Translations under genes and position numbers: made by a program
DNA from: Stegostoma tigrinum
Taxonomy: Eukaryota
Direction: 5' to 3'
Length of the DNA: 64,000 nucleotides
Assembly: GCF_030684315.1 (NCBI RefSeq)
Contig: NC_081388.1
Coordinates: 23,295,015 to 23,359,014, forward strand
The notes under the pieces: model-generated
The model's input: the letters and a program-made list of their open reading frames with translations, nothing else
Database searches by the model: none
What the model was told of the DNA's origin: nothing
Shown: positions 6,921-44,100 of the stretch, piece by piece
Layout of the letters: every line of letters begins with the position of its first letter
Numbering within the stretch: the first letter of the stretch is position 1

Positions 6921-7069
6921 GAATAAAGAAAGGTTGAGAGGTTGGGCCTATATTTGTTAGAATTTAGAAGAATGAGATAACACCTTATTAAAATATATAA
7001 GAATTGTAGAAAGCTTAACTGGATAAATGCTGAGATGTTGATTTCCCTTGAAACAATCTCAGAGCAAAA

Positions 7070-7264
7070 AGTTACAAAGTGTGAGGCTGGATGAACACAG
7101 CAGGCCCAGCAGCATCTCAGGAGCACAAAAGCTGACGTTTCGGGCCGAGACCCTTCATCAGAGGGGCTCTTTTGTGCTCCTGAGATGCTGCTTGACCTGC
7201 TGTGTCCATCCAGCTCCACACTTTGTTATCTCAGATTCTCCAGCATCTGCAGTTCCCATTATCC
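7070..7264. mobile_element. Short fold-back Penelope-like element (3' termini only) inserted in a CR1
   Basis: Inverted arms; TSD CTCAGAGCAAAA at 7058-7069 and 7265-7276. Confidence 0.8.
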
Positions 7265-8843
7265 CTCAGAGCAAAAGGTTGCCCATTTAAGGCAGAGATG
7301 ACAAAGAATTTCTTCTTTCAGTGTGTAATGAATCTTGAAACCCCTTGCTGCAGAGGGCTGTTTAAACCAAGCCATTAAGTATATTTAAGGTTAAGATAAA
7401 CAGATTTTTAATTGATAAGGGAATCAAGTGTTATGGTGAAAAGCCTGGAAACTGGTTTTGAAGATTATCAGATCAGCCAATGTCTCATTGAATGGTGGAG
7501 CAGACACGATGGGCTGAATGACCATAGTCTGCTCTTACCAGTTATGATCTTATAGAATCTTGGTGAAGGAAATAAGAGGATGTTGTTTACATGGATTTTA
7601 AGAAAGTGTTTGATTATGTAAATGACTAGATAACAAAACTGTGGCTAATCAGCTAGGAGGGCCAGTGTCAAATTGGATAAAGAAATGCTTCAGGGGCAGA
7701 AAACACAGGTCATGAAAAGCAGATTGAAGAATGTGGTGATCTGTCAGTCTTAGGACTTCTGCTTTCTATTGCTATTTATAAATTGCTTGGATCCGGCAAT
7801 ACAATAAACGCATGCATTTTGAACCTGCTGAGACCATATCATTATGATGTCAATCTATGGGAATTTCTTTTCACTGGACATGCAGCTAAGGGGATCAAGG
7901 AGTATGGAGAGAAAGCGGGAATGAGATACCGAGAATGGATGATCAGCCATGATCGTGGTGAATGGTGGTGTAGGCTCAAAAGGCCGAATAGCCTATTCCT
8001 GGACCTATTTTTGATGTTTCTATATCCAGCCAATCAGCATCCTCTTCTATTTGCTGTATGAATGATTATTCCTTTTCTGAATTTTGTTTTCTTAAGTTTG
8101 TGTCCTGTGTATACAAAACTAGAAGCTTCCATTTATGTCTTCCTTTAGAACGTTCGAAGTTCTACCAACTAATTATAAATATCGTGGAAAAACTTACATT
8201 TGTGCAACTTGTTCCAAGTATCTAATACCCTTTAAACTGACTTCACTTGAATGCTTCAGGAGAAGAAACTAATGCATTATAAAGTAGTGGATGTTATTGA
8301 GATTATGATATTCAGCAGTGAGTTATTTTAGTTTAAAATAAATTTCACTGTGTTATGAATACATGAAAAGAAAGGGAATAGAGTGATATGGATTCTGTAA
8401 GTGAAGACAGTTTTCGCATGGAAGGGCAAAATGTGTTGGTGCAGGCTTGGAGGACTGAAGGGCTTGTTCCTGTGCTGTAATGTTCTTTGTTCTTTAAAAT
8501 CTGGCTTGATAGATCATATTCCATTTTTGTCTTGCTTTTAACAAGGTGATCTTTCATTGAAACATAAGCATGGCAATGCTACAGATTCAGTTTTAACAAC
8601 AAAATAGAAGTTTATTACAGAAAAAGTGATAAAATATAATTTATTAAGTTGTTAATATGTAACACAAGTTTAGAGATTTTGAAACACTAAATAAAATCCC
8701 CATTAATCACAACAAGAAGCATTTAAAGTACTCACATCAGAGAGAATTCCCTTTTCTACCCGACATTGGGTTTGACTTAGCTGTGACTGTAATTCCTGGT
8801 TGTGAGAATCTGATCACCTGTTCCTTGATTCATCACACAAAGA

Positions 8844-8976
8844 TTTCTGAAGAAGGGTCCAGGCCCGAAACGTCAGCTTTCCTGCTCCTAAGATGCAGCT
8901 TGGCCTGCTGCGTTCATCCAGCTCCATACCTTGTTATCTCGGATTCTTCAGCATCTGCAGTTCCTATTATTTCTGA
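8844..8976 (+). mobile_element. Single-arm Penelope-like 3' terminal fragment with hammerhead motif
   Basis: Matches the terminal ~130 nt of the family; CTGAAGA..GAAACGTC at 8847-8874. Confidence 0.7.
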
Positions 8977-9260
8977 CCATAATCGTTCTAAGTTTTAAAT
9001 AACCAAATACTTCTGATTTGGAAATTTTACTAAACGCCTAACACTAAAGTAATCTGATTTAAACGATTCTAAGCTATCTTTTCCCTATCTCAGGAGCAAC
9101 TGCATAACTGCCCAAACTGAAACAAAACAGAATATCTTCCAAGCATTATGTCTTTCTTCTAACAAAATAAAAACTTTGACCTTCCAAAGTTGAGCTTAAA
9201 CAGAGCTATTTATCTTGTTCACTTATTCTCATGTAAGAACAAAAACCCATTACACTCTAA

Positions 9261-9642
9261 GAGGTAGTAGGAACTGCAGATGTAGGAGATAACAAGGTGT
9301 GGAGCTGGATGAACACGGCAGGCCATGCGGCATCAGAGGAGCAGGAAATCCTCTGAGGCTAAGATAATAAAATGTGAGGCTGGATGAACACAGCAGGCCA
9401 AGCAGCATCTCAGGAGCACAAAAGCTGACGTTTCGGGCCTAGACCCTTCCTCTCTGATGAAGGGTCTAGGCCCGAAACGTCAGCTTTTGTGCTCCTGAGA
9501 TGCTGCTTGGCCTGCTGTGTTCATCCAGCCTCATATTTTATTATCTTGGAATCTCCAGCATCTGCAGTTCCCATTATCTCTGATACTATTTTAATCCTCT
9601 GAGGCTGCTTGGCCTGCTGTGTTCATCCAGCTCCACACCTTG
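9261..9642. mobile_element. Nested fold-back Penelope-like elements: young copy 9361-9592 inside an older hairpin copy
   Basis: Inner TSD AATCCTCTGAGGCT (9347-9360, 9593-9606); outer TSD TACACTCTAA (9251-9260, 9643-9652). Confidence 0.8.
9454..9481 (+). ncRNA. Minimal type I hammerhead ribozyme motif (Penelope-associated)
   Basis: CTGATGA-A-GGGTCTAGGCCC (stem II)-GAAAC-GTC with ACGT palindromic stem III; activity not shown. Confidence 0.7.
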
Positions 9643-10300
9643 TACACTCTAAAAGGTCTTGCTCTCATACTGTTTAAATACAAATCACTATGGCAACAGA
9701 AATATTTTAAAAGATAATCATTAAACCCTTCAAACCCCCAGAAAACCTACATGTCACTGGTTCAAATACAAGCATTTAAACTCAAAAATAAATTGTATTA
9801 AAATATATATAAATCACACCCTTACATCATGATTCCAAAGGAAGATTTTTTTCTGCAATTCCAATCCATACACTGACTTTCAGGGAGCATGTGACAAACA
9901 ATTGAAATACAGTATTATAGACCTGTTACTGATCAATGTTCACTGTGTCATTGGCTCTCTGCTGCCAGGAATAAAGTTTAACCTCTCATTTTCATTTAAG
10001 TGAGTTGAAATGAAAGGGTCGTGAAGATCTTGAACAACTTGCCCTGATCAATTAAAACATTTCTGAACGGAGGTGGGTAACTGATTTGGAGCAAAGGTAG
10101 GTAAATGGTGTCAAGATCATGATCTCAATAAATGTAGAACAGACTCAATAGGCTAAATAACCAGCCGTAACACCTTAGCTTTCTTGCTATCCTTGAATCA
10201 AAGATGCTACGATAGGGCCATCTTTCTTGTGTGAGGAGCCACATTTTATTTCTTTGTTACTTACATGGCTGGTGAGCAACTTGTAGAAACAAACAGGTGT

Positions 10301-15960: not shown

Positions 15961-16094
15961 ATAACGTGAACACTTGTCATAGTTTGCATTCCCATGTGAT
16001 TATTCAACAATGATTTCAAAGGAATATTTTCCTGATGTTGAAAGCAATTTCATACCAGCGGATTACTGTAAACTTTGTAAACATCAATTTCAAG

Positions 16095-16915: not shown

Positions 16916-17051
16916 GTTGATTTGTTTGCCGAGCTGGTAGATTAGTTTGCAGACGTTTCATCATCATGCCTAGTAACATCATCAGTGTGCCTCTGATGAA
17001 GTGATGTTGGTCTGCCCCGCTTCTTACTTAAGTGGTCAGGTCTGATGTGGT

Positions 17052-18643
17052 AACAAAGTGTGAAGCTGGATGAACACAGCAGGCCAAGCAGCATCTCAGG
17101 AGCACAAAAGCTGACGTTTCGGGCCTAGACCCTTCATCAGAGAGGGGGATGGGGTGAGGGTTCTGGAATAAATAGGGAGAGAGGGGGAGGCAGACCGAAG
17201 ATGGAGAGAAAACAAGATAGCTGGAGAGGAGAGTATAGGTGGGGAGGTAGGGAGGGGATAGGTCAGTCCAGGGAAGACGGACAGGTCAAAGAGGTGGGAT
17301 GAGGTTAGTAGGTAGGAGATGGAGGTGCGGCTTGAGGTGGGAGGAAGGGATGGGTGAGAGGAAGAACAGGTTAGGGAGGCAGAGACAGGCTGGGCTGGTT
17401 TTGGGATGCAATGGGGGGAGGGGATGAGCTGGGCTGGTTTTGGGATGCGGTGGGGAAAGAGGGGATTTTGAAGCTGGTGAAGTCCACATTGATACCATCG
17501 GGCTGCAGGGTTTCCAAGCGGAATATGAGTTGCTGTTCCTGCAACCTTCGGGTGGCATCATTGTGGCACTGCAGGAGGCCCATGATGGACATGTCATCTA
17601 AAGAATGGGAGGGGGAGTGGAAATGGTTCGCAACTGGGAGGTGCAGTTGTTTATTGCGAACCGAGTGGAGGTGTTCTGCAAAGCGGTCCCCAAGCCTCCG
17701 CTTGGTTTCCCCAATGTAGAGGAAGCCACACCGGGTACAGTGGATACAGTATACCACATTGGCAGATGTGCAGGTGAACCTCTGCTTAATATGGAAAGTC
17801 ATCTTGGGGCCTAGGATGGGGGTGAGGGAGGAAGTGTGGGGGCAAGTGTAGCACTTCCTGAGGTTACAGGGGAAGGTGCCAGGTGCGGTGGGGTTGGAAG
17901 GGAGTGTGGAGCGAACAAGGGGGTGGTGGGGTTGGAGGGCAGTGTGAAGCGAACAAGGGGGTGGTGGGGTTGGAGGGCAGTGTGGAGCGAACAAGGGAGT
18001 TGGTGGGGTTGGAGGGCAGTCCATGATGACATAGCCACCATGGGCCTCCTGCAGTGCCACAATGATGCCACCTGAAGGTTGCAGGAACAGCAACTCATAT
18101 TCCGCTTGGGAACCCTGCAGCCCAATGGTATCAATGTGGACTTCACCAGCTTCAAAATCTCCCCTTCCCCCACCGCATCCCAAAACCAGCCCAGTTCGTC
18201 TCCTCCCCCCACTGCACCACACAACCAGCCCAGCTTACCCCCTCCCCCCACTGCATCCCAAAACCAGCCCAGCCTGTCTCTGCCTCCCTAACCTGTTCTT
18301 CCTCTCACCCATCCCTTCCTCCCACCTCAGGCCACACCTCCATTTCCTACCTAATACCTCATCCCACCTCCTTGACGTGTCCGTCTTCCCTGGACTGACC
18401 TATCCCCTCCCTACCTCCCCACCTATACTCTACTCTCCACCTATCATGTTTTCTCTCCATCTTCGGTCCGCCTCCCCCTCTCTCCCTATTTATTCCAGTT
18501 CCCTCTCCCATCCCTCTCTCTGATGAAACGTCACCTTTTGTGCTCCAGAGATGCTGCTGGGCCTGCTATGTTCATCCAGCTTCACACTTTGTTATCTTGG
18601 ATTCTCCAGCATCTGCAGTTCCCATTATCTCTGATACAATCTT
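17052..18643. mobile_element. Fold-back Penelope-like element with GIY-YIG endonuclease C-terminus
   Basis: NVVYCIHCTRCGFLYIGETKRRLGDRFAEH in ORF 17371..18222; minus arm 17052-~18020, plus arm ~18037-18643; TSD AGGTCTGATGTGGT (17038-17051, 18644-18657). Confidence 0.88.
17887..18020. repeat. 38-bp unit repeated ~3.5 times at the fold-back junction
   Basis: GGTGGGGTTGGAGGGCAGTGTGGAGCGAACAAGGGGGT-like unit; single copy in the 28746-29776 element. Confidence 0.8.
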
Positions 18644-18794
18644 AGGTCTGATGTGGTGTTTGGCCTTATTTCTGGTTTTACTTTTTAGCAGTTGGTGGAG
18701 TTCCGGATTGAATACCAGGCCTCTAGAGATTTCCATGCATGTCTTTGGTTGGCTTGTTCTAGGTTACATTGTCCCAGCCAAATTGGTGGCTTTC

Positions 18795-19800
18795 GTAGAA
18801 CATAGAACAATACAGCGCAGAACAGGCCCTTCAGCCCTCGATGTTGCACCGACCTCTGAACTAATCTAAGCCCATCCCCTACACTATCCCATCATTATCC
18901 ATATGCTTATCCAAGGACTGTTTAAATGCCCCTAATGTGGCTGAGTTAACTACATTGGCAGGCAGGGTGTTCCACACCCTTACCACTCTCTGAGTAAAGA
19001 ACCTGCCTCTGACATCTGTCTTAAATCTATCACCCCTCAATTTGTAGCTATGACCCTTGTACAAGCTGACATCATCATCCTCGGAAAAAGACTCTCACTG
19101 TCCACCCTATCTAATCCTCTGATCATCTTGTATGTCTCTATTAAATCCCCTCTTAGCCTCCTTCTCTCCAATGAGAACAGACCCAAGTCCCTCAGCCTTT
19201 CTTCATAGGGCCTGCGCTCCAGACCAGGCAATATCCTGGTAAATCTCCTCTGCACCTTTTCCAAAGCTTCCACATCCTTCCTGTAATGGGGCGACTAGAA
19301 CTGCACACAATATTCCAAGTGAGGCCGCACTGGCGTTTTGTACAGTTGCAGCATGACATCACGGCTCCGGAACTCAATCCCTCTACCAATAAAACCTAAC
19401 ACACAGTAAGCCTTCTTAACAGCACTATCAACCTGTGTGGCAACTTTCAGGGATCTATGTACATGGACACCAAGATCCTTCTGCACATCCACACTACCAA
19501 GAATCTTTCCATTGACCCGGTATTCTGCCTTCCCATTATTCTTCCCAAAGTGAATCACCTCACATTTATCTGCATTGAACTCCATTTGCCACCTTTCAGC
19601 CCAATTCTGCAGTTTATCCAAGTCTCCCTGCAACCTGCAACATTCTTCCACACTGTCCACCATTCCACCGACTTTAGTGTCATCTGCAAACTTACTAACC
19701 CATCCACCTATGCCTGTGTCCAAGTCATTTATAAAAATAACAAACAGCAGTGGTCCCAAAACAGATCCTTGAGGCACACCACTAGTAACCGGCTGAATAT
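18795..19800 (-). mobile_element. 5'-truncated CR1 LINE
   Basis: VTSGVPQGSVLGPLLF, SKFADDTK, 3' tail. Confidence 0.92.
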
Positions 19801-21443
19801 TTTCCAACAACCACCACTCGTTGCCTTCTTTCTTTGTCTGAGTGTGTGGAAACTGTGATAGTTGGTCCCATCTCTTGGTAGCTAGTTGGTGCTCATGTAC
19901 CCTGATGGCTGGTTTTCTCCCAACCTGTCTGGTGCAGTGTCTGTGGCAGTCCTTACATGGAATTTTATATACAACGTTGGTCCTGTTAATTGTGGGTATT
20001 GGATCCTTATTCTTGTAGTTGTCGCAGTGTAGCTGTGGGTTTGTGTGCTACCATGATTCCTAGTGGTTAGAGTATCCTGATGGTCATCTCTGGTACATTT
20101 TTCATGCGTGGCAGGGTGAATGGTGTATCAGGATATGCTGTATATTTCTGTTGTTGTCTTTTAAGTGCCCGTGTTGAGAACCAGGTTTCCAGAAATTCCC
20201 TTGCGTGTCTGGTGCTTGCTTGTCCCAGTATAGTCACTTTGTCCCAGGTGAACTGATGGCCTTCATTGTCTGTGTATATGGAGACAAATGAATACTGGTC
20301 GCGTCTTTTCACTGCCTGCTGGTGTTTGTGTATTCTGGATGTCAGTTTCCTCTCTGTCCAATGTAATGTTTATTGCACTCGCTGCATGGTATTGTATATA
20401 TCATGTTGGTCTTGTGTAATGTCTTTAGTATTTGATAATATTTGGCACAGTGTTGCTTTGGGTTTGTGTGCAATCACGATCTTATACGGTCTAAGGAGTC
20501 CGGTAGTCATTTCTGATATATTTTCGATTGGGACAAAGTGACCATACTAGGACAAGTGAACAGCAGACATGCAAGGGAATTTCTGGAAGCCTGGTTCTCA
20601 ACATGGAACTCCATGAACAAACACATAAATAGACCCCTTATACAGACTACTGCTAAAACAGCAGAGCCAGAAGTGATGAGACCATCACACCAAGGGATCA
20701 TACAAATCTGGAAGGAAGCAGAACACCAATGCTTCAATTAGAGGTGGCACTGATGATGTTGCCTAGAAAGGTAACAAAATGTCTGCACACCACGGAACAA
20801 CTGGCTTGGAGAGCTAACGAATTATTGCATCCACAACCCATGCTACAAATAAATAACTTCCAAGGACTCTCCAAAGTGCAGTATTCTCAACTATTAACTG
20901 TATTTCAGGTTGTATTCTTTATCTTCCTTCATTATCCCAGCATCATGGACCTTTATTGATTACTTACTCATATATTTCTTGTCTCTCATTCAGCTTTAGA
21001 TCATTTATTCCTTTCTGCCATTGTTGTTCACTGTCTCCATTTGTCACATTAATTGTCTGAGATTCAATGATATCAGAAAATCAAAGCCATTGTCGTAAGC
21101 TGCTGTGATAATTCCCATTCCCTTTGCAGTCCTGTCTTTGAGCCTGAATAAACCTGCCCCTGACATTAGCCTTCTCTGCAAGCCTGTGTTGAATTTCTGA
21201 CCGCAATTATGTTTGCGATACTCAGACCACCCACTTCCACTGCAATAATATTGCGTGTCTCCAGCCTTGCCTCGACCCATTGACTTCTGAAACCCCCATG
21301 CCCGCACTTGTTATCTTGAAACTCGCCTTAACCTTCAAAACCCACTGCTCCAACTGGACTCTGCCAATTTTATAAATTTGCACCCTCTGTGAAATTAATT
21401 TCATCCAACTCTGATCTCCATAACCTAACACACACCCATTCTA

Positions 21444-21666
21444 GATAATAAAATGTGAGGCTGGATGAACACAGCAGGCCCACCAGCATCTCAGGAGCAC
21501 AAAAGCTGACGTTTCGGGCCTAGACCCTTCTTCAGAGAGCTGATGAAGGGTCTAGGCCCGAAACGTCAGCTTTTGTGCTCCTGAGATGCTGCTTGGCCTG
21601 CTGTGTTCATCCAGCCTCACATTTTATTATCTTGGATTCTCCAGCATCTGCAGTTCCCATTATCTC
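21444..21666. mobile_element. Short fold-back Penelope-like element
   Basis: Near-perfect hairpin with a 4-nt loop; TSD ACACACACCCATTCTA (21428-21443, 21667-21682). Confidence 0.85.
21540..21567 (+). ncRNA. Minimal hammerhead ribozyme motif (mirror copy at 21508-21535 on the minus strand)
   Basis: CTGATGAAGGGTCTAGGCCCGAAACGTC. Confidence 0.7.
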
Positions 21667-21872
21667 TCACACACCCATTCTATTTACCCACAATGCCTGT
21701 GCTTGCTGACCTGTCAGCCTCCAGTCAGGCATTTTCAAATTATCAGCTATATTTTCAGTCTTTCCTCCATTTCACCTCTTCTACTGTTTGTACTTTTTGT
21801 AACCATCTTCAGCCCTGCAAATTTATCAGAGTTCTGTACTGCTCCAATTCTGGTCCTTTGATTTCAAACAGG

Positions 21873-22115
21873 GTAAGTATTCCCCAGTATACCAGGGAGA
21901 GCTTGCCTGCTCCTCTTCAGAATTGAGCCACAGAACCTTTTACACCTATTTGAAAGAGAAAAAAGAACATCTGTTTAAAATCTCATCTAAAATACAGCTA
22001 CGCAGGCACTCCAAACCTCTTAACTACTGCATTGGACAGTCAGTTTTGACTTGTGTACGCAAAATATGAAATGGGACTTGAGCCCACACCCTTAACCGAG
22101 AGGCAAGCATGCTAG
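21873..22115 (-). mobile_element. Old DeuSINE (SacSINE1-like); duplicated copy at 54257-54500
   Basis: tRNA-like head GGCTCAAGTCCC and a Deu-like core (GATGAGAnnTTAAAC...GTAAAAG...GAAGAGGAGCAGG). Confidence 0.55.
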
Positions 22116-22374
22116 AAAGTGACACAAATTTTGGTCAACATTTATAGGCTTTAAGAGAGTCTCTAAGGAGAAGAGAGAGGCAAAGAATTTGGGAAGGAAT
22201 TCCGGAGGTTAGGGCCTAGGTTGCTGAAGGTGATGTTGCTAACAGTGACGGGACAATGATAATCAGAACACACAGCATACCCAAGGAAGTTTAGAGGGCT
22301 GCAGGACTTTATGGAGATACAGAGAGAAAAGGCCTGGAGGCATTTACATGTGATGTGAATTTTAAAATTGAGAA

Positions 22375-22515
22375 AAAAACCAAAAGAACTGCGGATGTTG
22401 TAAATCAGGTACAAAAACAAAGTTGCTGGAAAAGCTCAGCAGGCCTGGCAGCATCCGTGGAGGAGAAAACAGAGTTAATGTTTCAGGTCCGGTGACCCTT
22501 CCTCAGAACAGTGTT
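22375..22515 (-). mobile_element. Short Penelope-derived fragment with hammerhead-like core, present after gene A but absent from paralog B
   Basis: Reverse reads CTGAGGA AGGGTC ACCG GACCT GAAACATT; empty site at ~54745. Confidence 0.55.
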
Positions 22516-26100: not shown

Positions 26101-29100
26101 CACCCTTACACTTGTTGTGGAGAAAGGGGCAATCGTTGAAAGATGGATTCATTGGAAATCATTGCATAGCAGGAATCAGCCTTTAGGGAAGTGAGAAAGT
26201 AGGTATTGTCATCTAAGGTGTTGGCCCATAATGATCCAAAGCAAGATGTGGTGCTGACATGCGATGCTTCCTGTACGGTAGCAGGGTAGTGATGGCTCAC
26301 GGAGGCCCAACGGAGAGGAATTACCAATAACATATGCTTCCTGGACTTTGTGGCTGATGCTGAATGCAAACGTACCAAGTTGAGAAGGAAGGTTTGGCGG
26401 TCATCTTTGGTGTGAGGAAGTTCCATTAATATCTTTACACATGTGAATTTGTCATAGTAATGGACCACAGACTCCTGCTAGAGCTACTTAAAGAAGGCAA
26501 GGCTGTGCCTCCCATAGCTTCTGGTCAAATTCATTGGGCCCTTATTCTCAGTGGGTACCATTATCCGTTAGAACACCATCCAGGAAGCCAAATGGCAAAT
26601 GCAGATGCATTGACCCACTTCCCACTGGTAGATACTCCACTGGTGGTGCCTCCCCTGGAAGAGTCCGTTTTGCTTTAGCACTTTCTGGACACCCTTTTGG
26701 GTCACCGGCGACAACATTCAACTCTAGACACAGAAAGATCCCATCCCAGCAAAACTATAATGGCTGGTGGTAGCGGCGGCGGTGGTGGGCGGGGGGGGGG
26801 GGGGGGGCGCGGAAACAGAAGTGCCATTACAACTACAATTGAAACCTTGCTTGATCTGGTGAGACCAGGTTACCGTAGAGGATGGCATATTACTTAGAGG
26901 AACAAGAGTGATTGTCCCAGATACTGACTGAACTGCACAAATTTCCAAAATGAAGATGTTGGCAAGGAGTTATGGCTGGCAGCCTGGATTGGATGCTGAC
27001 ATAGCTGCATTAGTAGGACAGTGCCCAAATTGCCAATAAGCATCACCACTGGCAGCACTCCATAAATGTGTGGGAATTACTGGGTAAACCTTGGACTTGG
27101 TTACACATTAACTATTCTGCTCCTTTCACAGAATCCTGACAGTGTGGAAGCAGGTCTTTTGGCCCATCAAGTCCACACGCCCCTCCAAACAGCGTCCCAC
27201 CCAGGCTCCTACCCTACCCCTGTAACCCTGCATTTTTTCAATGGCCAATTCTCCTAATCTGAACATCTTTAGACTGTGGGAAGAAACTGGAGCAACTGGA
27301 GGAAACCCACACAGACACGGGGAGAATGCGCAAACTCCACACAGACAGTCATCTGAGGGTGGAATTGAACCCAGGTCCCTGGCGCTGTGAGGCAGCAGTA
27401 CTAACCACTGAGCCACTGTGCTGCCCAAAATGGGCTCAATATTCCATTGTGGATGCCTATTCAAAGTGGTTAGACAAGCATAAAACTCAATTGGCAAATT
27501 CAGGAACGATGATTGAAAAGCTATGATCATTATTTGTGAGACATGGATTCGCAGAAGTATTAGTCAAGGACAATGGGACATCATCTGCCAGCAGGGAATT
27601 CAAGTATTTCCTAAAGTCAAATGAATTCGGCAAGTTCGGATAGCTATCATACAATCTATCTTCCATGTTTTGGTGGAAAGAACCAAATGTTCAAGGCAGG
27701 CTTAATGAAGCAACCTACAACACTGTTCGATATCAAACTGTCCCAATTCCTGTTTGATTATTGGAACATCCCTCATGCAACAATTGGGGCAGCTCCAGCA
27801 GTGTTGCCAATGGGGAGAAGACTTTGTTAAAGCTGATAGCTCCAGACCTGGGGTGGTGGTGGCGGGGGAAGGGGAGGTGGAGGGTGAAATGGCAGTAGGA
27901 ACGCCAATGCCTGCCACATGCCTCCTCTAAGTGAGTTCACTTCATGGGGATTTCATTTGTTGCTGGAACACACAAATGGCCCAGCATGGATATGAGGCAA
28001 GGTCGACACAATGTCAGGTCCTGTGACATACAAAGTTCAGGGAGGTGAGGTGGTCCTGAACAAACAAATAGATCAGCTGAAAGCTGCTACTGCGCAAACA
28101 GGGCAGGTGAAAAACATACCTGGCCCCTCAGAACAGCCAGAAAAGATGTCAGAAACCATGGGTTGTCCCCCTCTGTCCAGCATTGAGGAAACCTCAGAGT
28201 CAGAGATGGATGCAGCCTCAAAAACATTACCGCCGGGAGAAGAGGAAGGAACACTCTTGAGATGCTGCAGATGCAAGAGACGGACAATGGTCTGGTACAT
28301 GCTGCCCATGTCCAAGTCAGAGGAACCAGACCTGAAGCGAAAACATCCCAGGAGAAGCTACAAAAGAAAGGACAGACCTACATTCCTGGACTTGGTGGTA
28401 AGGAAACATGGCCAGGTGGATCTCATTAACACTGAGATTCTAGATTGGCTCAGTTTAACAAACCCCAGCTGATAGATATAAACAGGGAATTCAGAAGGTC
28501 TTCTCAGTCTAGGGACTGACTTTGATCTGGCTGGTCACAGCTCATGTATAGGCCATATGTAAATGAAGGATGAAATGGTGATGGGAAACTGGCTTCTGTG
28601 CAGTTATTTCAGAATGGCAGTGTGTGGGTTTACAGCCACAAATGCCCCCCCAACCCCCCTTGGAGTTATTACCCAGGCATGTGGGACAAACATAGCGCAG
28701 GAGGAAGGTACTTCAACACATGAAAAGGAACACATGCAGGAGACTCCAAGATAATAAAATGTGAGGCTGGATGAACACAGCAGGCCAAGCAGCATCTCAG
28801 GAGCACAAAAGCTGACGTTTCGGGCCTAGACCCTTCATCAGAGAGGGGGATGGGGAGAGGGAACTGGAATAAATAGGGAGAGAGGGGGAGGCGGACCGAA
28901 GATGGAGAGTAAAGAAGATAGGTGGAGAGAGTGTAGGTGGGGAGGTAGGGAGGGGATAGGTCAGTCCAGGGAAGACGGACAGGTCAAGGAGGTGGGATGA
29001 GGTTAGTAGGTAGCTGGGGGTGCGGCTTGGGGTGGGAGGAAGGGATGAGTGGGAGGAAGAACCGGTTAGGGAGGCAGAGACAGGTTGGACTGGTTTTGGG

Positions 29101-32100
29101 ATGCAGTGGGTGGGGGAGAAGAGCTGGGCTGGTTGTGTGGTGCAGTGGGGGGAGGGGATGAACTGGGCTGGTTTAGGGATGCAGTGGGGGAAGGGGAGAT
29201 TTTGAAACTGGTGAAGTCCACATTGATACCATATGGCTGCAGGGTTCCCAGGCGGAATATGAGTTGCTGTTCCTGCAACCTTCGGGTGGCATCATTGTGG
29301 CAGTGCAGGAGGCCCATGATGGACATGTCATCTAGAGAATGGGAGGGGGAGTGGAAATGGTTTGCGACTGGGAGGTGCAGTTGTTTGTTGCGAACTGAGC
29401 GGAGGTGTTCTGCAAAGCGGTCCCCAAGCCTCCGCTTGGTTTCCCCAATGTAGAGGAAGCCGCACCGGGTACAGTGGATGCAGTATACCACATTGGCAGA
29501 TGTGCAGGTGAACCTCTGCTTAATGTGGAATGTCATCTTGGGGCCTGGGATGGGGGTGAGGGAGGAGGTGTGGGGACAAGTGTAGCATTTCCTGCGGTTG
29601 CAGGGGAAGGTGCCGGGTGTGGTGGGGTTGGAGGGCAGTGTGGAGCGAACAAGGGAGTCACGGAGAGAGTGGTCTCTCCGGAAAGCAGACAGGGGAGGGG
29701 ATGGAAAAATGTCTTGGGTGGTGGGGTCGGATTGTAAATGGCGGAAGTGTCGGAGGATAATGCGTTGTATGCGTTAATGCAGGAGACTGTTTCTCTGAGC
29801 CACTTGTACCCAACTAACCAGTTACAGAGCAGTATTATTAGAGGCAGGGAGCAGTTTATCCACGTGTCCCATTTCCCGAAAGGGTGCGGGAGAACAGGAG
29901 CCCAAAGTAATAATAACAACAGTAATATTAAATTCTGACCTTTGACCCTGATGTCCACATCCTTCTCATCACTTCCATATTGATTGGTAGCTCTACATAT
30001 ATAAATTCCTTGATGTTCTGAGGTTATGTACGGAATACGAAGAAATCCAGGACCAATCTCAATATTGTTGCCATTACTGGGATTTACCCACTCTAATACA
30101 GGTGAGGGTCTTCCATCGGACATACAGCTTAATGTAATTTCATCACCTTTAGTGACTTCTACCGGAAAGCCTGACACTGTTTTGTTATTTACTGATATGG
30201 TCATGATTGTGTCTCGTGGTTTATCTGGAAAAGAGAAGAAAAAGATGAAAATAGGCAGGCATACCCACAGGATCACTGATACAGCTCCCCAACACTGCTT
30301 CAGTTAGCAGGATATCCAAACCTGGCCACGTACTGGGGGAGAGTGGACTTCAACAGGGCAAGAAAAGAACAGGGCCGAATGAACAAAAACCAAAGGTTCA
30401 TGGAAAATCAATAGCTGAACAATGAACTGCCTTCAAAGACAAAATGGTTTGGGCACAGTCAACGAAAATTCCCACAAAGGGGCAAAGGGAGGCAAACAAA
30501 TGCAAACGATTTTCCATGTCAAAGGAGATGGAAATTCAGTTAGAAAGTGTGTTTCTGATGCATGTCAGATAGTAATTACAGCTGAGAACCAAACACAATA
30601 CAGAAGGCTCAGAAGTGATGTGACAAAGCAAAATGAGAAACAGATTGAGAGTTAACATATATAAAAAAAATTAGCTGTTTTCCACAAGCACCTCCACAAT
30701 AGAGGGTGGTGAAAGGAGGATTCGGGACAATAAAAGAGATTAACATTTAGGGGCAAGTGGCAGAGCTGAGATATGAAACTAATTTTCCATATCTGTCTTT
30801 ACCAAAGAGATAGATGCCATCCAGGCTGTGGTGCCAGGGGAAGAACCTCTGTCACTTAGAATGGATTAGATTTGATAAAGAGGAATGTTTGGATAAGCTC
30901 TCAGTACACAGAGTTGAAAAGGCTTGGGACTAGACCAAATGCTTCCGAGGACATGAAAGGAAGTGAGAATGGAAATTACACAGGTAGTCGCAAGAATCGT
31001 TCAATCTTGCCTGGAGTTGAAGTCAGAGCTGGAAGAATTTAGAATTGGAAATCTTCTCCAAAAATGTTTTAAAGATTGAACCAGCGATAGCAGACCAATC
31101 AGTTGAACTTCAGCAACGGGAAAACTTTCGGAAACAGTTATTCGGAATAAATAATTGTCACAAGGCTGCTGATGTGGTGTACAGGCTTCCAAAAGCTGTT
31201 TGATTATGTCCCACACAACAAGATGTTTGAAGAAAGTGATAAGTCATTGAATAAAAGGCATTACACTAATATAGAATCAAAATTGACTCAGTGATAGGAA
31301 TCAGAGAGTAGCAGCCGATGAATACATTTTGGACTGGATGGAGACGTATAGCAGCATTCCCCAGGGGTTAGTATGATGACCCTTACTGTTACGAATATAG
31401 ATGGTCTAGATCTTGTTGTGCAGGAGACAATTCCAAAATTAGCTAATGACAGAAAATGTGGAAGCATTGTAAACTGTGAGGAGGACAATGTTCTGGTCAT
31501 TTACAAGGGGTAGAGTGGGCTGGTAGGTTACAGCGGCAGTGGCACATTGCTATACAGTTAGCAGGGAGTTGTCCTGGGAGGCTTCAACAGTGACCCTGGA
31601 CCCCACAACGTGACATGACATGAGGCCAAACATGGACAAGGAAACCTCCTGGTGTTTACCATGAACCATACCCCCTCCCCTGCCGATCTGAATTTGTACT
31701 CCTCCATGTTGAACATCATTTAGAGGAAACACTGAGGGTGGCCAATACAGAATGTACTCTGGGTGGGAGACTTCAATGTCCATTGATAAGAATGACTTAG
31801 CAGCACCACCGACTGAGCTGGTCGAGTACTGAAGGATATTGCTGCTAGACTGGGTCGGCGGCAAATCAAGAGAGAACCAACAACAGGGACAAGCAAAGGT
31901 GACCTCATCCGCAACAATTCACCTACCACTAACATGTCTTTCCAAGACAGCATCAGTAATGCACAGTCCTTGTGGAGACCAAGTCATGTCTTCACATCGG
32001 GGAGCCGCAGGATGGTAATGAATTTCTGTGGGCAGTCAAATTTGAGCAGGATGCTCCATACTACCTCACAGTTGACCAAGGCAAACACATTTCTCGATCA

Positions 32101-35100: not shown

Positions 35101-38100
35101 ACTGGTAGAAAGACTCACAGCATCATGCCATGTTCCTCGGGATCCTAGTCAGCATTCTTTCCTGGCCCAAAACTGTTTCTGTTAGTCCTGTTGTTCTTAT
35201 GAGATATGCACAAAAAGCAGGGCAAATCCAACCCAGCCAATTCCTGCCCTATCAGTCTCCTCTCTATCATTAGTAAAGTGATGGAACGTGCCCTCAACAG
35301 CACTATCAAGCAGCACCTGGTCAGCAATAACCTGCTCAGTGACGCCCAGTTTGGGTTCTGCCAGGGCCACTCAGCTCCTGACCTCCTTACAGCCTTGGTT
35401 CAAGTATGGGATAAAGAGCTGATTTCCACAGGTGTGCTGGGAGTGACGACCCGTGACAGCGAGTTTGCCTTTGACTAAGTGTGCTATCAAAGATAGTTGT
35501 GAATGTTGGAGGATAGACATTTCTACTCCAGGAATTTCCCAGTCAGTTGTGTCCCACCCAACCAAGTTCAGCTGCTTCATCAATGACTTTGCCTCCACCA
35601 TAAGGTCAGAAATGAAGATGCACTGAGGATTACTCAATTTCATCACCACTGGCAACACCTCAAGAGTTGAAATAGTCCATATTCAAATGCAACAATATCT
35701 AGGCTTGGTTTGACAAGTGACACATTTGTGCAATACAAAAACCAGGGAATGATCATCTCCAAGAAGCAACATTCCAACCACTGCCACTTGACATTTAATG
35801 GCATCACTGTCATTGCATTCCCCACTAACAACATCCCGGGGTTACCATTGACCAGAAACTAACCTGAACTCACCATACAAATACTGTGGCCACAGGAGCA
35901 GTCAGAGACTTGGAAAACTGCGGTGAGTAACTCACCTCTGACTCCCCAAACCATGTCCACCATCTACAAGGCACTAACCAGGAGTGTGATGGAATACTCC
36001 TCACTTGCCTTGATGAGTGTAGCTCGAGTAACACCCAAGAAGCTCATTGATGAGGGTAGTGCAGTTGCTGTGTTTACACAAACTTCAGTAAGGCCTTTCA
36101 AAAGGTCCAACATAGAAGGTATCTTCAAAAAGTAACAGCCAAAGGGATCTCAGGAAGTTGACAAACGGAATCCAACATTGGTTTGCAAATAGGACACAAA
36201 TGATGATTGCTGAGGGATGTTTTTGTGATTTGAAGCCTGTGACCATATTGATCAGTGCTGGGATTCTTGCTGTTTATTATGTACATGAACAACTTGGATG
36301 TGCATGCAGAAGGTATAATTTTAAGTTTGCCGATGATACAAAAATTGGTAGTGTTATTGATAGTAAGGAGGATGGTTTCAGGATACAATCTGATATTGAT
36401 TAACTGGTAAATTAGGCAGTGAAATGGTAGATGGAAATCAATCTTGATGAGTATCCAATATGGGAAGGACATACACAATGAATGGTAAGCCCTGAAGGAA
36501 TTCAGAAGAACAGAGGGATCTTGGTTACAAATCTATAGATTCCTGAAATTATCCACGCAGGTAGACAGGGTGGTAAAGAAGGCATACAGGATACATACCT
36601 ACGTTTGATGTAAAATGTAGGAGCAAGGAAGTCCTGTCACAACTTTATGAAACATTGATTAGGTCTCAGATGGAATACTGTCTGCAGTTCTGGTTGCCAC
36701 ATTATCAGAAAGATGTGATTGCACTAGAGAGGATGCAGAGGAGATTCACCAGGATGTTGTCTGGGAAGGAAAGGCTCAGTTATGAGGAGAGACTGGATAG
36801 GCTCAGTGCGTTTTCCCCACAGCAGAGGAAGCTGAGGGAGGTCCTGATTGAGGGAGACAAAATTACAAGAAGCATAGAGGGTGTAGATAGTGAGAACCTT
36901 CCCACATGTCAGACGTGTCTAACACCTAAGGACCTGAGTATGAGGTGGGGAGTAAGTTGTTTAGATGACATCTGAGAAACAAAGACAATCCCCCCTCCCA
37001 TATGGTGGGAGAAATATGGAACATGCTGTCTGAGGGGGTGGTGGAGGCAGATATTCTCACAACATTTAAGAAGCATCTGGGCAAACACACAATCTGCCGG
37101 GCAGAGTAGGCAATGGACCAAGTGCAGGTAAACGTGGTTAGTATAGATTGTGGTTAGTTGTTCAGCATCAGCACTGTGGGCAGGCGGGCCTGCTTCTACG
37201 CTGTATGACTTCATGAGCATCCAGAGCAAAGCAGCCTACTTGATTGGCAGAAGGCTAATTCTGATGAAGAGTCACTGGACCTGAAATGTTGACTCTCTTT
37301 CTCTCCACATGCTGCTGAATTTCTCCTGCAATTTCTAGCTTTGTTTGTGATAGCTACCCAATTCATTGGCACCACATCCACAAACATTGATTCCCTCCAC
37401 CACTGCTCTGTATCAGCAGTGTATACTATCTGCAGGATGCACTGCAGAAGTTCGCTCAAGATCCTTAGTCAGCACCTTCCAACCCCACGATCACTTCCAT
37501 TTAGAAGGACAACGGCAGCTCATACATGGGAACAGTACCATATGCATGCCCACTTCCAAACTATTCACCATGCTGACTTTGAAATATGTTACCATTCCTT
37601 CACTGTCACTAGGTTACAATCCAGGAACACTGTCCCCAACAGCTCTGCCACAATTGCATTGTGGGTCACCCTCCAGCTCATCGACACTTTCTCAAGGGCA
37701 ACTGAAGATACACAATAAGTACTGCCCAGCTATTGACAGCTAGTGCATAAAAGAAAACAATCCTGCAATCTGAGATAATGGGAACTGCAGATGCTGGAGA
37801 ATCCAAGATAACAAAGTGTGGAGCTGGATGAACACAGCAGGCCAAGCAGCCTCTCAGGAGCACAAAAGCTGACGTTTCGGGCCTAGACCCTTCATCAGAG
37901 AGGGGGATGGGGAGAGGGTTCTGAAATAAACACCTCCGCTCGGTTTGCAATAAACAACTGCACCTCCCAGTCGCGAACCATTTTAACTCCCCCTCCCATT
38001 CCTTAGACGACATGTCCATCCTGGGCCTCCTGCAGTGCCACAATGATGCCACCCGAAGGTTGCAGGAACAGCAACTCATAGTCCACTTGGGAACCCTGCA

Positions 38101-41100
38101 GCCCAATGGTATCAATGTGGACTTCACAAGCTTCAAAATTTACCCCTCCCCCACTGCATCACAAAACCAGCCCAGATCGTCCCCGCCTCCCTAACCTGTT
38201 CTTCCTCTCACCTATCCCCTCCTCCCACCTCAAGCCGCACCCCCATTTCCCACCTACCAACCTCATCCCACCTCCTTGACCTGTCCGTCCTCCCCGGACT
38301 GACCTATCCCCTCCCCACCTCCCCACCTATACTCTCCTCTCCACCTATCTTCTTTTCTCTCCATCTTTGGTCCGCCTCCCTCTCTCTCCCTATTTATTCC
38401 AGTTCCCTCTCCCCATCCCCCTCTCTGATGAAGGGTCTAGGCCCGAAACGTCAGCTTTTGTGCTCCTGAGATGCTGCTTGGCCTGCTGTGTTCATCCAGC
38501 TCCACACGTTGTAATCCTGCAATCTCATTTATTTAACCTTTTCTCAGGATTTTGGTAACACTGGAAGAGCTGCACTTAACATCTGTCCTTGGTGAGTTTA
38601 CTGTAAGTGGTTCACTCCAGAGGATATGTGCTAATGAAACAGTGGAACTGCTCTCAGAGATAATTCTCTGGCTGTGAAACACTTTGAGAATCCCTGAGAA
38701 TGAGAAAGGGACTACAGGAATGTACAATTCTTCTTTCATTTGGTCTTGTGGTAACTTGTGTTTGCAACTTTTGAAACGACATTTGTCAGTATTAAAGATT
38801 AGACAGTGGTCAATGTATTTACTGGTAGCTGCTTCTCTATTGTTTAAAGTGATGAAAGTTCTGACACGTTGCAATGTTGACAGTGATGAACTATCAGAAT
38901 GTTGCTGAATGGTAAGCCACCCCAGCCCTCCCCCCACAACCAGAATCCTTACCGTACACCTCAATGAAGACCGTGTGATTCTTTGAGGGAACTGATGGAT
39001 ACTTCTCAAAATCAGCCATACAGACAACTTCGATCAGACCAGTTTCCTGCGGTGTCCACGCTGCTGTTGATTGGACAGTGTTAGAATTTGGCCTTGTGGT
39101 AACTGAGTTCAGTTCCTCACCATCCTGAAACCATCGTACTCTCATCTTCTCAACTGGATAGACATCTGAGACCTCACATGTTAATATGACCTCTTGCTTC
39201 ACTTCTTTGGGCCTTTTGTCCAGGATTCTAGGCTGATCCATGAAAGCTGTAATACAGACAAGAAATTCACTTCATTTTAATTTGCTGCGGTGTATTTTAG
39301 TTTTTAATGGACAGTGTGGAAAAGGGAGCAATGCAGGTATTGGACAATACATCACCCCAGGGATTTACCACATTCACCCATAGTGAGGAAACTGGAGTCA
39401 TCTGCAGGAGATTATATCGCACTATAAGAAGGATCTGCTAATGCCGATCATGGGATGTGACTGGTAAATTTGTCACAGCTTTTCTTATTCATTCACAGGG
39501 TGAGGGCGTTGCTGGCTGGGCAGCAACTACTGCCCATCCCTAATTGCCCAGAGGGCAGTTAAGAGTCAGCCACATTGCTGTAGGTCTGAAGTCACATGTC
39601 AGCCAGACCAGGTAAGGGTGGCAGTTTCCTTCCCTAAAGGACCAGATGGGTTTTTCTGACAATTAACAATAGACTCATGAACACCATTGGAATCTTAAAT
39701 TGTTTTTACTGAATTCAAATTCCACCATGGCAAAATTCGAACCCAGAACATGAACTAGATCTCTGGATTAATAGTCTAGTGATAATACGACTAGACCAGT
39801 ACCTCAATTCACAACAACAAATCAGCTCACTAATTTTATTTTTAAATTAATCTTGCTAATTTTCAGACATTGCAAATATTGAGATAATAAAGTGTGAGGC
39901 TGGATGAACTCAGCAGGCCAAGCAGCATCTCAGGAGCACAAAAGCTGACGTTTCGGGCCTGGACACTTCATCAGAGAGGGGGATGGGGTGAGGGTTCTGG
40001 AATAAATGGGGAGAGAGGGGGAGGCGGACCGAAGATGGAGAGAAAAGAAGATAGGTGGAGAGAGTATAGGTGGGGAGGTAGGGAGCAGATAGGTCAGTCC
40101 AGGGAAGACGGACAGGTCAAGGAGGTGGGATGAGGTTAGTAGGTAGGAGATGGGGGTGCGGCTTGGGGTGGGAGGAAGGGATAGGTGAGAGGAAGAACAG
40201 GTTAGGGAGGCAGAGACAGGTTGGACTGGTTTTGGGATGCAGTGGGTGGAGGGGAAGAGCTGGGCTGGTTGTGTGGTGCAGTGGGGGGAGGGGACGAACT
40301 GGGCTGGTTTAGGGCTGCGGTGGGGGAAGGGGAGATTTTGAAGCTGGTGAAGTCCACATTGATACCATTAGGCTGCACGGTTCCCAGGCGGAATATGAGT
40401 TGCTGTTCCTGCAACCTTCGGGTGGCATGTTTTTGGCACTGCAGGAGGCCCATGATGGACATGTCATCTAAAGAATGGGAGGGGGAGTGGAAATGGTTTG
40501 CGACTGGGAGGTGCAGTTGTTTGTTGCGAACCGAGCAGAGGTGTTCTGCAAAGCGGTCCCCAAGCCTCCGGGGACCGCTTTGCAGAACACCTCCGCTCGG
40601 TTCACAACAAACAACTACACCTCCCAGTCGCAAACCATTTCCACTCCCCCTCCCATTCTTTAGATGACATGTCCATCATGGGCCTCCTGCAGTGCCACAA
40701 TGATGCCACCTGTAGGTTGCAGGAGCAGCAACTCATATTCCGCTTGGGAACCCTGCAGCCTAATGGTATCAATGTGGACTTCACAGCTTCAAAATCTCCC
40801 CTTCCCCCACCGCATCCCTAAACCAGCCCAGTTCGTCCCCTCCCCCCACTGCACCACACAACCAGCCCAGCTCTTCCCCTCCACCACTGCATCCCAAAAC
40901 CAGTCCACCCTGTCTCTGCCTCCCTAACTTGTTCTTCCTCTCACCCATCCCTTCCTCCCACCCCAAGCCGCACCCCCATCTCCTACCTACTAACCTCATC
41001 CCACCTCCTTGACCTGTCTGTCTTCCCTGGACTGACCTATCCCCTCCCTACCTCCCCACCTATACTCTCTCCACCTATCTTCTTTTCTCTCCATCTTTGG

Positions 41101-44100
41101 TCCGCCTCCCCCTCTCTCCCTATTTATTCCAGAACCCTCACCCCATCCCCCTCCCTGATGAAGGGTCTAGGCCCGAAATGTCAGCTTTTGTGCTCCTGAG
41201 ATGCTGCTTGGCCTGCTGTGTTCATCCAGCCTCACATTTTATTATCTCGGATTCTCCAGCATCTGCAGTTCCCATTATCACGATTGCAAATATTGAGTCT
41301 GTTTCTTGTATGCCAATCACTCTGAGCGGTCCATGCTGATGTATTCCTGATTTAGCTTCACTGTGATCTTTCCTTTAACTGTCCCAGTTGAGGCTTGGAT
41401 TGCAATGTTTGTAATCCAGGTGTAAATCTCTTTTCTTGTTATCTCTCAGAATCTGAATTCTTAGCATTTCCTTAAAGGATTATTTGGTGTAATATACAAG
41501 ATGATCAGAGGATTAGATAGGGTGGACAGTGAGAGTCTTTTTCTGAGGATGATGACTTCAGCTTGTACGTGGGGTCTTAGCTACAAATTGAGGGGTGATA
41601 GATTTAAGACAGATGTCAGAGGCTGGTTCTTTACTCAGAGAGTGGTAAGGGCGTGGAACGCCCTGCCTGCCAATGCAGTTAACTCAGCCACATTAGGGGC
41701 ATTTAAACAGTCCTTGGATAAGCATATGGATAATGATGGGATAATGTAGGGGGAGGGGCTTAGATTAGTAAATTGGCAGCTCGTTCGATAGGCGTAACAT
41801 CTTGTGTGTGAAAAAACTGTTCCCTCAGGTACCTTTTAAATCTTGCCCCTTTCACCTTAAAGTCATTCCCTTTAGCTTAGGACTCCCCTCCCCGGGGAAA
41901 ACACCTTGGCCATTCACCCTATCAATGAGCCTCATGATGTTGTAAACCTCTGTAAAATCATCCCTCAGCCTACAACGCTTCGGGGAAAACAACCCAGCCC
42001 ATTCAGCCTTTCCCTATAGCTCAAACCTCCAATCCTGGCAACATCCTTATAAATCTTTCCTGAACCCACAATGGTTTTAATAACTTTTCTTTTTAAACTT
42101 ACAGCAGTTCCTTCCTTATTCTTTTATTGTAAAACAGTCCTTTTCCTATTTCAGTCAGAAATCAAAATTAAAGTAAAATACAAAGTAGCAGTATTTACAA
42201 AGCATTTGCAGCAAACTTCAGCCAGAAGTGTCCGACTGAGATGCCTAGCTTCACAGATGTCAATGACAAAATGAAACAGTATTTGTGAAAACTAATTAAA
42301 CACTTGTATTTGTCCCTGATTTATGTTTGTTTGTATTTTTTGTGAATGGGGCTCAAAAAGTTGGTCTTTGATTTTAAAGCATAGATTTATCAGATTACAT
42401 TGTTGCTTTAATTTTACTTTGCTAAAATTACTATGTCTTTAATAAATTGCCATATCTTTTGTTTAAGATACAGATTGATGTATGGAAGTAATGTTTTGCA
42501 ATCTGAGATTGTTCATTTCAAAGTCTGTTTGGAAACTATTGGAGTGAATTTTGAGGGTCTTTGAAGGTTTTAATTTTACTGTGTTGCAAGTACAGAAATA
42601 GGATGGTTCAGTTGGTTCAATTGTCTGTCTCTGCATCAGAACAAATTCAATACTGTTTTGCTTAATGTTGTTTACCTGCAAACTAACAGTTATATTGCAG
42701 CAATAAGCAATGATGAATGAAACAGTATATTCCAGCATTGTATTGGGCACTGGTGGTCATCTTGGAATCAAACTATTAAGACAATTAGCTTGAAAAATTG
42801 CAGTTCTGAGCTGTCAAGCTTGGTTTTACACATTCTGTGGGTGGATTAAAGATCTGTAGGACATTTACAATTACACCATGAACTGGTGAGAAAGCTGTAT
42901 GTTTGCATTCTTATCCAGCATCAGCAATGTTTACCATCACACTTTATAGTAATGACAAAATGGGAACTAACAACAATTTTTGTCAATATCATTTCCTATT
43001 GGTTATTCTCAACAAATTATAAATATTTAATCTATGGTATTCTCTAAATGAGGAGAGTGTTTCTTGTGCAGCTGGAACTTACAGTAGGTTTGCAGAGTGA
43101 CAGAGGAGTTTGTGATTGACATTGTGGCGTTAGAGCCCAAGTCCACTTCAGCCAAGCAGGTGTACTCCTGTCCATCATCTAATAGACTTGCAGTGAAATT
43201 GAAGACATTTCTCAACCTGTTATCTTCATCCGGAAGACCTTGTTTTTCTGCAGAATTTCTCTGAACAATCTCACTCCCTCTTATCCATGTGAGAATGAGT
43301 TTGTTGTTTGGGTAGACTCTTGGTCCGATGCACTGCAGACTATATCTCCTGTTAACCTCCAGCACTTCAGGGAGCAATGTAGTGTTTATCTCTCGATCTG
43401 TTAAAGGAGAATCACAGTTAATAGGATTCACAGAAATAGTGTGTTTAAAGTTTCAGGCCTCCACTTGGTGCAGGTCAGGAATGGAAGTGGACTAACCAGT
43501 GTACAGCTTCCCAACATTTTGTCAACTCCAGCATGTAGCCTGAACTATGTGTGCACCCAGTAGGAATCCCCAACCCACCTCTGCAGCTACCGATTAGACT
43601 CATTCATACCCTTGTTAAGGGGAATAAGGGAGGCTGTTTGAGATTTTCCATTCAGTCTCCAGTTTCCCAATACAACAGAGACTGATGAACTGCCTGGAAG
43701 CAGACCAGGTTACCAGTACTCAAGGCAGCTTGTGGGCCTTCATGCCTGCGTAAGTGCAGGTCCCGTTGAAGACTGCCATATGGAAAGGTTCTCCCTGCAA
43801 TGGTGTTGGATGAGCTGCTTTCTCTTGTTTCACATGAAACTTTGAAAAACTGGTGGAAATGACTTCAGCCTACATGTGACTCCAGACCTTTAACAAGCTT
43901 TCAGCATCCTGGGGGTTACCATTTCTCAAAAACGGAGCTGAACTTGTCATACAAACACTGCGGCTACAAAAATAGATCAGAGGCTAGGAATTCTGTGGTG
44001 AATGACTCATCTCCTCCTTCTTCAAATCGTGTCCACTATCTACAAAGCATGAGTCAGGAGTGCAATGGAATACTCCACACTTGCCTGAATGAGTGCATCT

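Follow-up and report, generated by a model that had tools for sequence, protein, structure and literature searches.

The 64-kb window described here (positions 23,295,015 to 23,359,014 of contig NC_081388.1 of Stegostoma tigrinum; it contains no N) carries seven insertions of an endonuclease-bearing Penelope-like element (PLE), each of which consists of two 3' ends of the same element fused head-to-head. An inverted-repeat scan of positions 6,500-42,000 finds long arm pairs at all seven sites that the original prediction for this DNA had named, and reading of the sequence together with the flanking direct repeats places the inserts at exactly the starts it had given. In each unit an antisense arm is followed by a sense arm, with both 3' ends pointing outwards, as seen in BLAST comparison with the solo copy at 28746-29776, a natural insertion on the minus strand that serves as the coordinate reference for the arms. 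A single target-site duplication (TSD) of 10-15 bp, variable in length, surrounds each whole unit. One outer end of a unit, the short end, lacks the terminal tail that is present on the other. The seven fold-back units are:

7058-7276, fold-back 1: insert 7070-7264, 195 bp; left antisense arm with the short end, right sense arm with the tail; TSD of 12 bp, CTCAGAGCAAAA, at 7058-7069 and 7265-7276.
9251-9655, fold-back 2, of an older subfamily: insert 9261-9642, 382 bp counting a nested copy; tail on the left, short end on the right; TSD of 10-13 bp, TACACTCTAA followed by [G/A]AG.
9347-9606, fold-back 3: insert 9361-9592, 232 bp; short end on the left, tail on the right reaching position 71 in the numbering given below; TSD of 14 bp, AATCCTCTGAGGCT.
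17038-18657, fold-back 4: insert 17052-18643, 1,592 bp; left arm of about 950 nt, short-ended and holding a GIY-YIG coding remnant, right arm of about 620 nt, tailed; TSD of 14 bp, AGGTCTGATGTGGT.
21429-21682, fold-back 5: insert 21444-21667, 224 bp; short end on the left, tail on the right; TSD of 15 bp, CACACACCCATTCTA.
37759-38525, fold-back 6: insert 37772-38512, 741 bp; left arm of about 160 nt with the tail, right arm of about 585 nt, short-ended; TSD of 13 bp, AATCCTGCAATCT.
39869-41297, fold-back 7: insert 39884-41282, 1,399 bp; short end on the left, tail on the right; TSD of 12-15 bp, ATTGCAAATATTGAG.

Anatomy and ends of the fold-back units

The measured inserts of 195-1,592 bp and TSDs of 10-15 bp agree with the ranges that had been predicted (0.2-1.6 kb and 10-16 bp). 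Since perfect direct repeats of 12-15 nt abut both ends, a chance origin of the duplications is excluded. Arm-to-arm identity is 80-98% across the units. Fold-back 7 is a near-perfect palindrome, with arms that are 95-99% complementary and 8 nt between the innermost arms. The arms of fold-back 5 (98 nt) match at 95% and lie 4 nt apart. Fold-back 3 sits at the exact centre of fold-back 2 with a TSD of its own; its arms are 98% complementary and 3 nt apart, and it splits the centre of its host, whose arms of about 60 nt each have inner ends 8 nt apart. The series extends down to 195-bp hairpins of two terminal modules, and a full-length body is absent within the window.

All outer ends were stacked, with numbering that starts at the C of the landmark CATCCAGC. 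The short ends fall at positions 19-28, a 10-nt window, in 7/7 units (TTGT, TTATC or TTATCTTGG), and the long ends pass a conserved CCAGCATCTGCAGTTCCCATTATC block to stop at 57-60 in five units or at 71 in two. The extra tail is 34-50 nt long. Every unit has it exactly once, on the right in five cases and on the left in two (9261 and 37772). The proposal that each unit has two preferred end positions, one short and one long, thus holds in 7/7 units, with a tail that is tighter in length than the 20-50 nt claimed; stacking also bears out the diverged tail of the 9261 copy. If each arm chose its end type independently, such unlike (heterotypic) ends in all seven units would have P<=0.5^7 = 0.008, in what is a small sample. 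Solo copies can have either end type, short at 28746 and 61401 and long at 8846.

In alignment A1, columns 51-58 (for example, 9498-9505) hold AGATGCTG, the complement of the conserved tail core CAGCATCT, which follows some 55 nt downstream in columns 110-117 (9553-9560). The loop of this putative stem encloses the short-end start cluster, and the 57-60 cluster lies about 15 nt past the stem. In a covariation check 84% of cells pair, versus 23-49% when the two sides are slid, with one compensatory change only.

At 2/9 junctions the flank beyond the short end is similar to the first 12-13 nt of the tail; no similarity is seen at the other seven. In the solo copy 28746-29776, the TSD (28734-28745 and 29777-29788) matches the tail start at 10/12 positions (permutation p ~1e-4), and in fold-back 6 the flank past the short end (38513-38525) matches it at 9/13 positions (permutation p ~1e-3). 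These two junctions suggest that pairing of the target overhang with the RNA tail may at times position the primer. A G- and T-rich sequence with GTT follows the nick that primes the short-ended arm in 5/8 cases, a post hoc observation in a small sample; in the flanks of the eight TSDs no sequence pattern accompanies the nick on the opposite strand, the one that does not prime the short-ended arm.

At the centre of the units, the inner junction is different in all seven, in line with the earlier claim that two outward 3' ends are fused at variable truncation points. The positions at which the two arms of a unit stop are nevertheless related: in 4/7 units no more than 10 nt of template separates the inner ends (permutation P 0.004, random re-pairing of the 14 inner ends). 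In fold-back 7, which is 1.4 kb long, they are at template positions 686 and 677. Four of the seven centres are near-symmetric, with loops of 3-9 nt. Since the inner ends are correlated, the two cDNAs are not truncated independently, and the original idea that two cDNAs are made and then joined is incomplete in this respect.

The element and its other copies

The sense strand of the longest arms and of the solo copy translates into a Cys-rich knuckle and a GIY-YIG endonuclease with a YIGET...R...EH pattern. The Pfam GIY-YIG match (E 2.6e-4, 21.7 bits) is slightly below the 22.6-bit cut-off. The ESM Atlas feature neighbours of the C-terminal protein are eukaryotic GIY-YIG clusters, and a word-based protein search yields 84 relatives, among them proteins of Hypanus sabinus (a stingray) and Leucoraja erinacea (a skate), as well as Holothuria proteins annotated as 'GIY-YIG domain-containing'. 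One skate relative, P0070, has RVT_1 at E 5.6e-19 beside its GIY-YIG match, in a gene model from another species. A PDB sequence search with the C-terminal protein gave no match.

About 95 nt from the 3' end of the element is a minimal hammerhead ribozyme motif, CTGATGA-A-GGGTCTAGGCCC-GAAAC-GTC. The core pattern CTGANGA-helix II-GAAAC-GTC occurs 14 times in the window, versus 0.28 in shuffles. The core has the features given in PMC4209133, namely one additional base between positions 9 and 10.1, pairing of G10.1 with C11.1, and a palindromic ACGU, which stands in the place of helix III. Rfam reports no family at gathering score over the whole window, nor at E<=10 on one arm, and helix I of the predicted hammerhead is weak, with about 2 bp; for these reasons hammerhead activity is not claimed, and the predicted hammerhead is recognisable solely through the published minimal-motif criteria. 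The distal tail TCTCTGAT at 9572-9579 repeats without change the 8 nt at 9449-9456, which span the 5' edge of the hammerhead box; this identity could promote template switches guided by homology between the two sites.

The Cys-rich motif with GIY-YIG, the minimal hammerhead, the head-to-head truncated copies inside a variable TSD and the one-sided tail are together those of endonuclease-bearing PLEs of the Penelope/Poseidon type. The Penelope-like identity assigned earlier is therefore upheld by the GIY-YIG remnant, the hammerhead core, the 5' truncation and the variable TSDs. The element is very abundant in this cartilaginous-fish genome: contigs from public sequencing runs of the same organism pile on it at about 10^5 times the summed depth of the unique flanks, a ratio that is not a copy number, and the 3'-terminal bin is the highest. 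Among the three organisms whose contigs were compared, the PLE is abundant in A and B and sparse in C.

In addition to the fold-back units, the window contains the following PLE copies and coding remnant:

28734-29788, minus strand: solo 5'-truncated copy of the main family, insert 28746-29776, 1,031 bp, the longest solo copy in the window; short 3' end, no inverted partner; TSD of 12 bp, ATGCAGGAGACT.
29069-29773, minus strand: C-terminal open reading frame (ORF) remnant, Cys-rich knuckle followed by GIY-YIG endonuclease.
8846-8990, plus strand: solo copy of the older subfamily, starting at the 5' edge of the hammerhead box; long tail; TSD not clear.
61389-61457, plus strand: mini solo insert, 61401-61445, 45 bp, short 3' end; TSD of 12 bp, AGACAGAGTTAA.
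22370-22506, minus strand: solo 3' end of a second, related PLE family, starting at the 5' edge of its own hammerhead box.
37261-37400, plus strand: second copy of the second PLE family, starting at the hammerhead box.
47990-48069, minus strand: old diverged PLE 3'-end fragment.

The mini insert at 61401 interrupts the 3' end of an older, oppositely oriented PLE-like element (61340-61470), beside the hammerhead cut region of the latter. A different high-copy repeat, abundant in contigs of organisms A and C, occupies 18708-19811. Positions 25717-26058 and 29533-30276 hold a long terminal repeat (LTR)-retrotransposon-like reverse transcriptase (RT) fragment with a YLDD motif and a minus-strand host immunoglobulin-like domain exon that directly adjoins the solo PLE copy.

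Formation of the palindromes

Many arms begin close to landmarks of the predicted hammerhead. Five main-family arms, the solo copy at 8846 and both copies of the second family start no more than about 10 nt from the 5' edge of the CTGATGA box, a cluster that could mark either the 5' end of the RNA or the boundary of a protein-bound module. In the two PLE families, 5' ends near the edge of the CTGANGA box are seen at 7134-7168, 8846-8850, 9449-9457, 21532-21543, 22500-22507 and 37259-37262. The predicted hammerhead cut lies 1-3 nt from the start of two further arms, at 7169 (the right arm of fold-back 1, at a distance of 1-2 nt) and 9348, which hints that ribozyme-cut RNA may be used as template. 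Measured from the short 3' end of the element, the inner end of the left arm of fold-back 1 is at about 98-103 nt and that of the right arm at 63-66 nt. Since the arms start near these landmarks, those of the ~0.2-kb class correspond to a hammerhead-to-tail module. Several high-depth contig joints map 63-70 nt from the 3' end; the joint sides are <30 nt, and these are leads only.

Fold-back 4 has irregularities of its own. At the inner end of its long arm, directly before the junction, positions 17887-18020 form a 38-bp tandem array of 3.5 units (93% matches), and the 38-nt segment is single copy in the solo reference copy. The array looks like the product of repeated template jumps that would have preceded joining. 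The right arm has a 15-nt deletion at 18524-18540 that removes hammerhead sequence (helix II) and is bordered by short GAA repeats.

The units are probably single-event, head-to-head double insertions of an endonuclease-bearing PLE whose protein has a C-terminal GIY-YIG domain and whose terminal repeat includes a minimal hammerhead. The element endonuclease would nick the target with a stagger of 10-15 nt, and both freed 3' ends would prime reverse transcription on element RNA. One primer would be placed at the internal start cluster, giving the short end, and the other at the cluster 34-50 nt further downstream, giving the tail. The 3' ends of the two cDNAs would then be united by template switching or end joining, leaving a palindrome of any size within one TSD. 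The anatomy, the single TSD, the strictly unlike ends, the correlation between inner ends and the identity of the element come from the window itself; the literature supplies two-strand cleavage and extension, together with the two RT start sites on either side of the tail. With an inner junction that differs in every unit and a TSD that varies in length, the original view of single integration events and one mechanism stands. Its proposal that both strands prime at two preferred positions fits the published pair of RT start sites and the use of both strands reported in PMC11167929, and is for the same reason not new.

We infer that each event uses one start site of each kind and that the two syntheses are coupled. 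Simple joining of two cDNAs predicts independent 5' truncation, yet the inner ends correlate and cluster at hammerhead landmarks, so that some coupling is needed, for instance through use of a single RNA molecule, a 5' end common to the RNAs, or copy-back. Both syntheses probably run on one RNA or on RNAs that share a 5' end, which would explain why the arms often stop at almost the same template position. The same-template comparison is divided: the arms of fold-back 7 are mutual closest relatives, with 96.1% identity, and those of fold-back 4, discussed below, are not alike at all diagnostic sites.

A more specific form of this double priming, ordered and coupled on one processed RNA, is put forward tentatively and is rather doubtful. 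The first target strand would prime at the internal site, leaving the RNA tail free; the second strand would then prime downstream on the same RNA and trail the first polymerase to the same RNA 5' end, which would often lie at a hammerhead landmark (the cut site or the 5' edge of the core). If true, the ordered scheme would account for the obligate one-tailed palindromes, the near-symmetric centres and the recurrent ~200-bp class centred on the hammerhead, and it would provide the first genomic evidence that hammerhead-processed RNA serves as template in vivo.

Several points weigh against double priming. The 64-kb window contains no RT sequence of the element family, every copy being 5'-truncated before the RT, and the mechanistic steps are read from sequence alone, none having been directly observed. 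In vitro, the RT start site is the same for top and bottom strands (PMC11167929), so that the strict pattern of one end of each kind is unexplained by published data; this counts against the ordered scheme as well. In the same-template comparison the arms of fold-back 4 disagree at sites diagnostic of subfamilies, and their number of 39-nt repeat units is unequal by one, which would misfit a single RNA template, in the ordered scheme too, unless later mutation or slippage has intervened. Finally, the near-symmetric centres would be predicted equally by snap-back synthesis.

In snap-back synthesis, one target-primed cDNA would fold at its 3' end and copy itself into the second arm, after which endonuclease or flap trimming would strip one of the two tails. 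Self-priming has been inferred from palindromes at inverted junctions (PMC3846280), the tail has been ascribed to endonuclease-mediated resolution (PMC8557442), and the loops of 3-9 nt at 4/7 centres are of the kind that such folding would leave. The arm that is longer at the centre must in this case be the first-made strand, yet it is the arm without the tail in 5/7 units, among them all three strongly asymmetric ones (7070, 17052 and 37772), and the copy of a tail-less cDNA cannot gain a tail. The asymmetries of 326 and 536 nt would, moreover, demand very large loops. Snap-back synthesis is therefore judged unlikely.

Two independent insertions, with an endonuclease that recognises the terminus of its own element and so directs a second copy, inverted, into or beside an earlier one, would make use of a published activity, cleavage of the element's own junction sequence, and PLE-into-PLE nesting is indeed present (9361 into 9261, and 61401 into an older PLE end). 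Genuine nesting, as of 9361 in 9261, is betrayed by its own 14-bp TSD, whereas each composite has one TSD and no internal one; together with the unlike ends in 7/7 units, this makes a two-step origin very improbable. A miniature inverted-repeat transposable element (MITE), or another DNA transposon with long terminal inverted repeats moved by a transposase, would share the hairpin shape and the flanking direct repeats, but is hardly credible with TSDs that vary from 10 to 15 bp, termini that are not equivalent, seven different inner junctions, inverted pieces of the GIY-YIG ORF in the longer copies and solo, non-inverted copies with the same 3' ends; shared inner junctions with a fixed TSD, named beforehand as the observation that would speak for a MITE family, were not found among the seven units. 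An assembly artefact, with false palindromes made by chimeric long reads or collapsed repeats, deserves equally little credence, for although short-read contigs break at every copy and none bridges an insertion, each copy has perfect TSDs at both ends, the arms have diverged by 2-20%, and one fold-back is nested in another with its own TSD. The TSDs, unequal termini, differing junctions, arm divergence and nesting thus led to rejection of the MITE, assembly-artefact and two-insertion explanations.

Relation to known systems

The architecture of the units, and the account of the tail by two start sites, are already published (PMC3846280, PMC8557442, PMC11167929). A Penelope unit is completed by an inverted pseudo-LTR (pLTR) within a 9-bp TSD (PMC3846280), and an inverted 5'-truncated copy, a TSD and a tail of 30-40 bp on one end only have been described (PMC3846280, PMC8557442). 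Purified PLE protein cleaves and extends both target strands, and reverse transcription starts at two adjacent internal sites, the genomic tail being the stretch between them (PMC11167929). In Schistosoma mansoni, dual minimal hammerheads occur on opposite strands, 100-700 bp apart (PMC4209133). No later mechanistic paper was found among those of 2022-2026 in the library searched. The original prediction is in effect the union of these published results, and the window is a clean example of a published architecture, not a discovery. What the window adds, on small numbers, is the heterotypic ends, the correlated inner ends, the junctions at hammerhead landmarks in two families and the two target/tail homologies.

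PLE integration is still only partly understood. With its very high copy number in the genome, the family could be used as a natural record of possibly hundreds of thousands of integration events. If the regularities (heterotypic ends, correlation between inner ends, preferred junctions near hammerhead landmarks and occasional target/tail homology) hold genome-wide, they would constrain models that the sole published in vitro system leaves open.

In twin priming by L1, the element RNA is primed a second time by the other target strand, so that one TSD comes to enclose an inverted segment. This additional primer anneals at an internal site, and the result is an inverted upstream segment and a single poly(A) 3' end. 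The units of the window have second-strand priming, as proposed here, and an inverted segment within one TSD in common with L1. They are set apart from LINE-1-type twin priming by arms that both end in the 3' terminus of the element, with no poly(A).

The dual hammerheads of S. mansoni (PMC4209133) are likewise inverted pairs of PLE minimal hammerheads at short distance and have been ascribed to truncated PLEs; the paper differs from the present analysis in giving no analysis of ends, TSDs or tails. Pen2a_Av and related Penelope families of Adineta vaga (PMC3846280), and the general PLE scheme of Craig et al. 2021, Fig. 2 (PMC8557442), share with the window the head-to-head inverted 5'-truncated copy. 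In these, the unit is surrounded by an 8-10 bp TSD, a tail of 31-40 bp is present on one inverted terminus, and palindromes occur at the inverted junction. They are centred on full-length or pLTR-ORF-pLTR units, whereas the units of the window are without a full-length body.

Poseidon_Ac (PAc), a PLE of the Penelope/Poseidon clade from Anolis carolinensis (PMC11167929), has in common with the window element the GIY-YIG endonuclease, a hammerhead CUGAUGA box with an ATG about 25 nt before the cut site, and a tail that lies between two internal RT start sites; the PAc protein cleaves and extends both target strands. It belongs to another family and host, and it differs in several other respects. 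The window has three end clusters (19-28, 57-60 and 71) versus two in PAc, and its fold-backs have one end of each kind, whereas no strand difference is seen in vitro. The in vitro target is AT-rich (ATT), whereas the targets in the window are not obviously so, and the target/tail homology at two window junctions has no counterpart in vitro. The minimal RNA template of the Anolis element is similar in extent to the hammerhead-to-tail module that makes up the ~0.2-kb class of the window.

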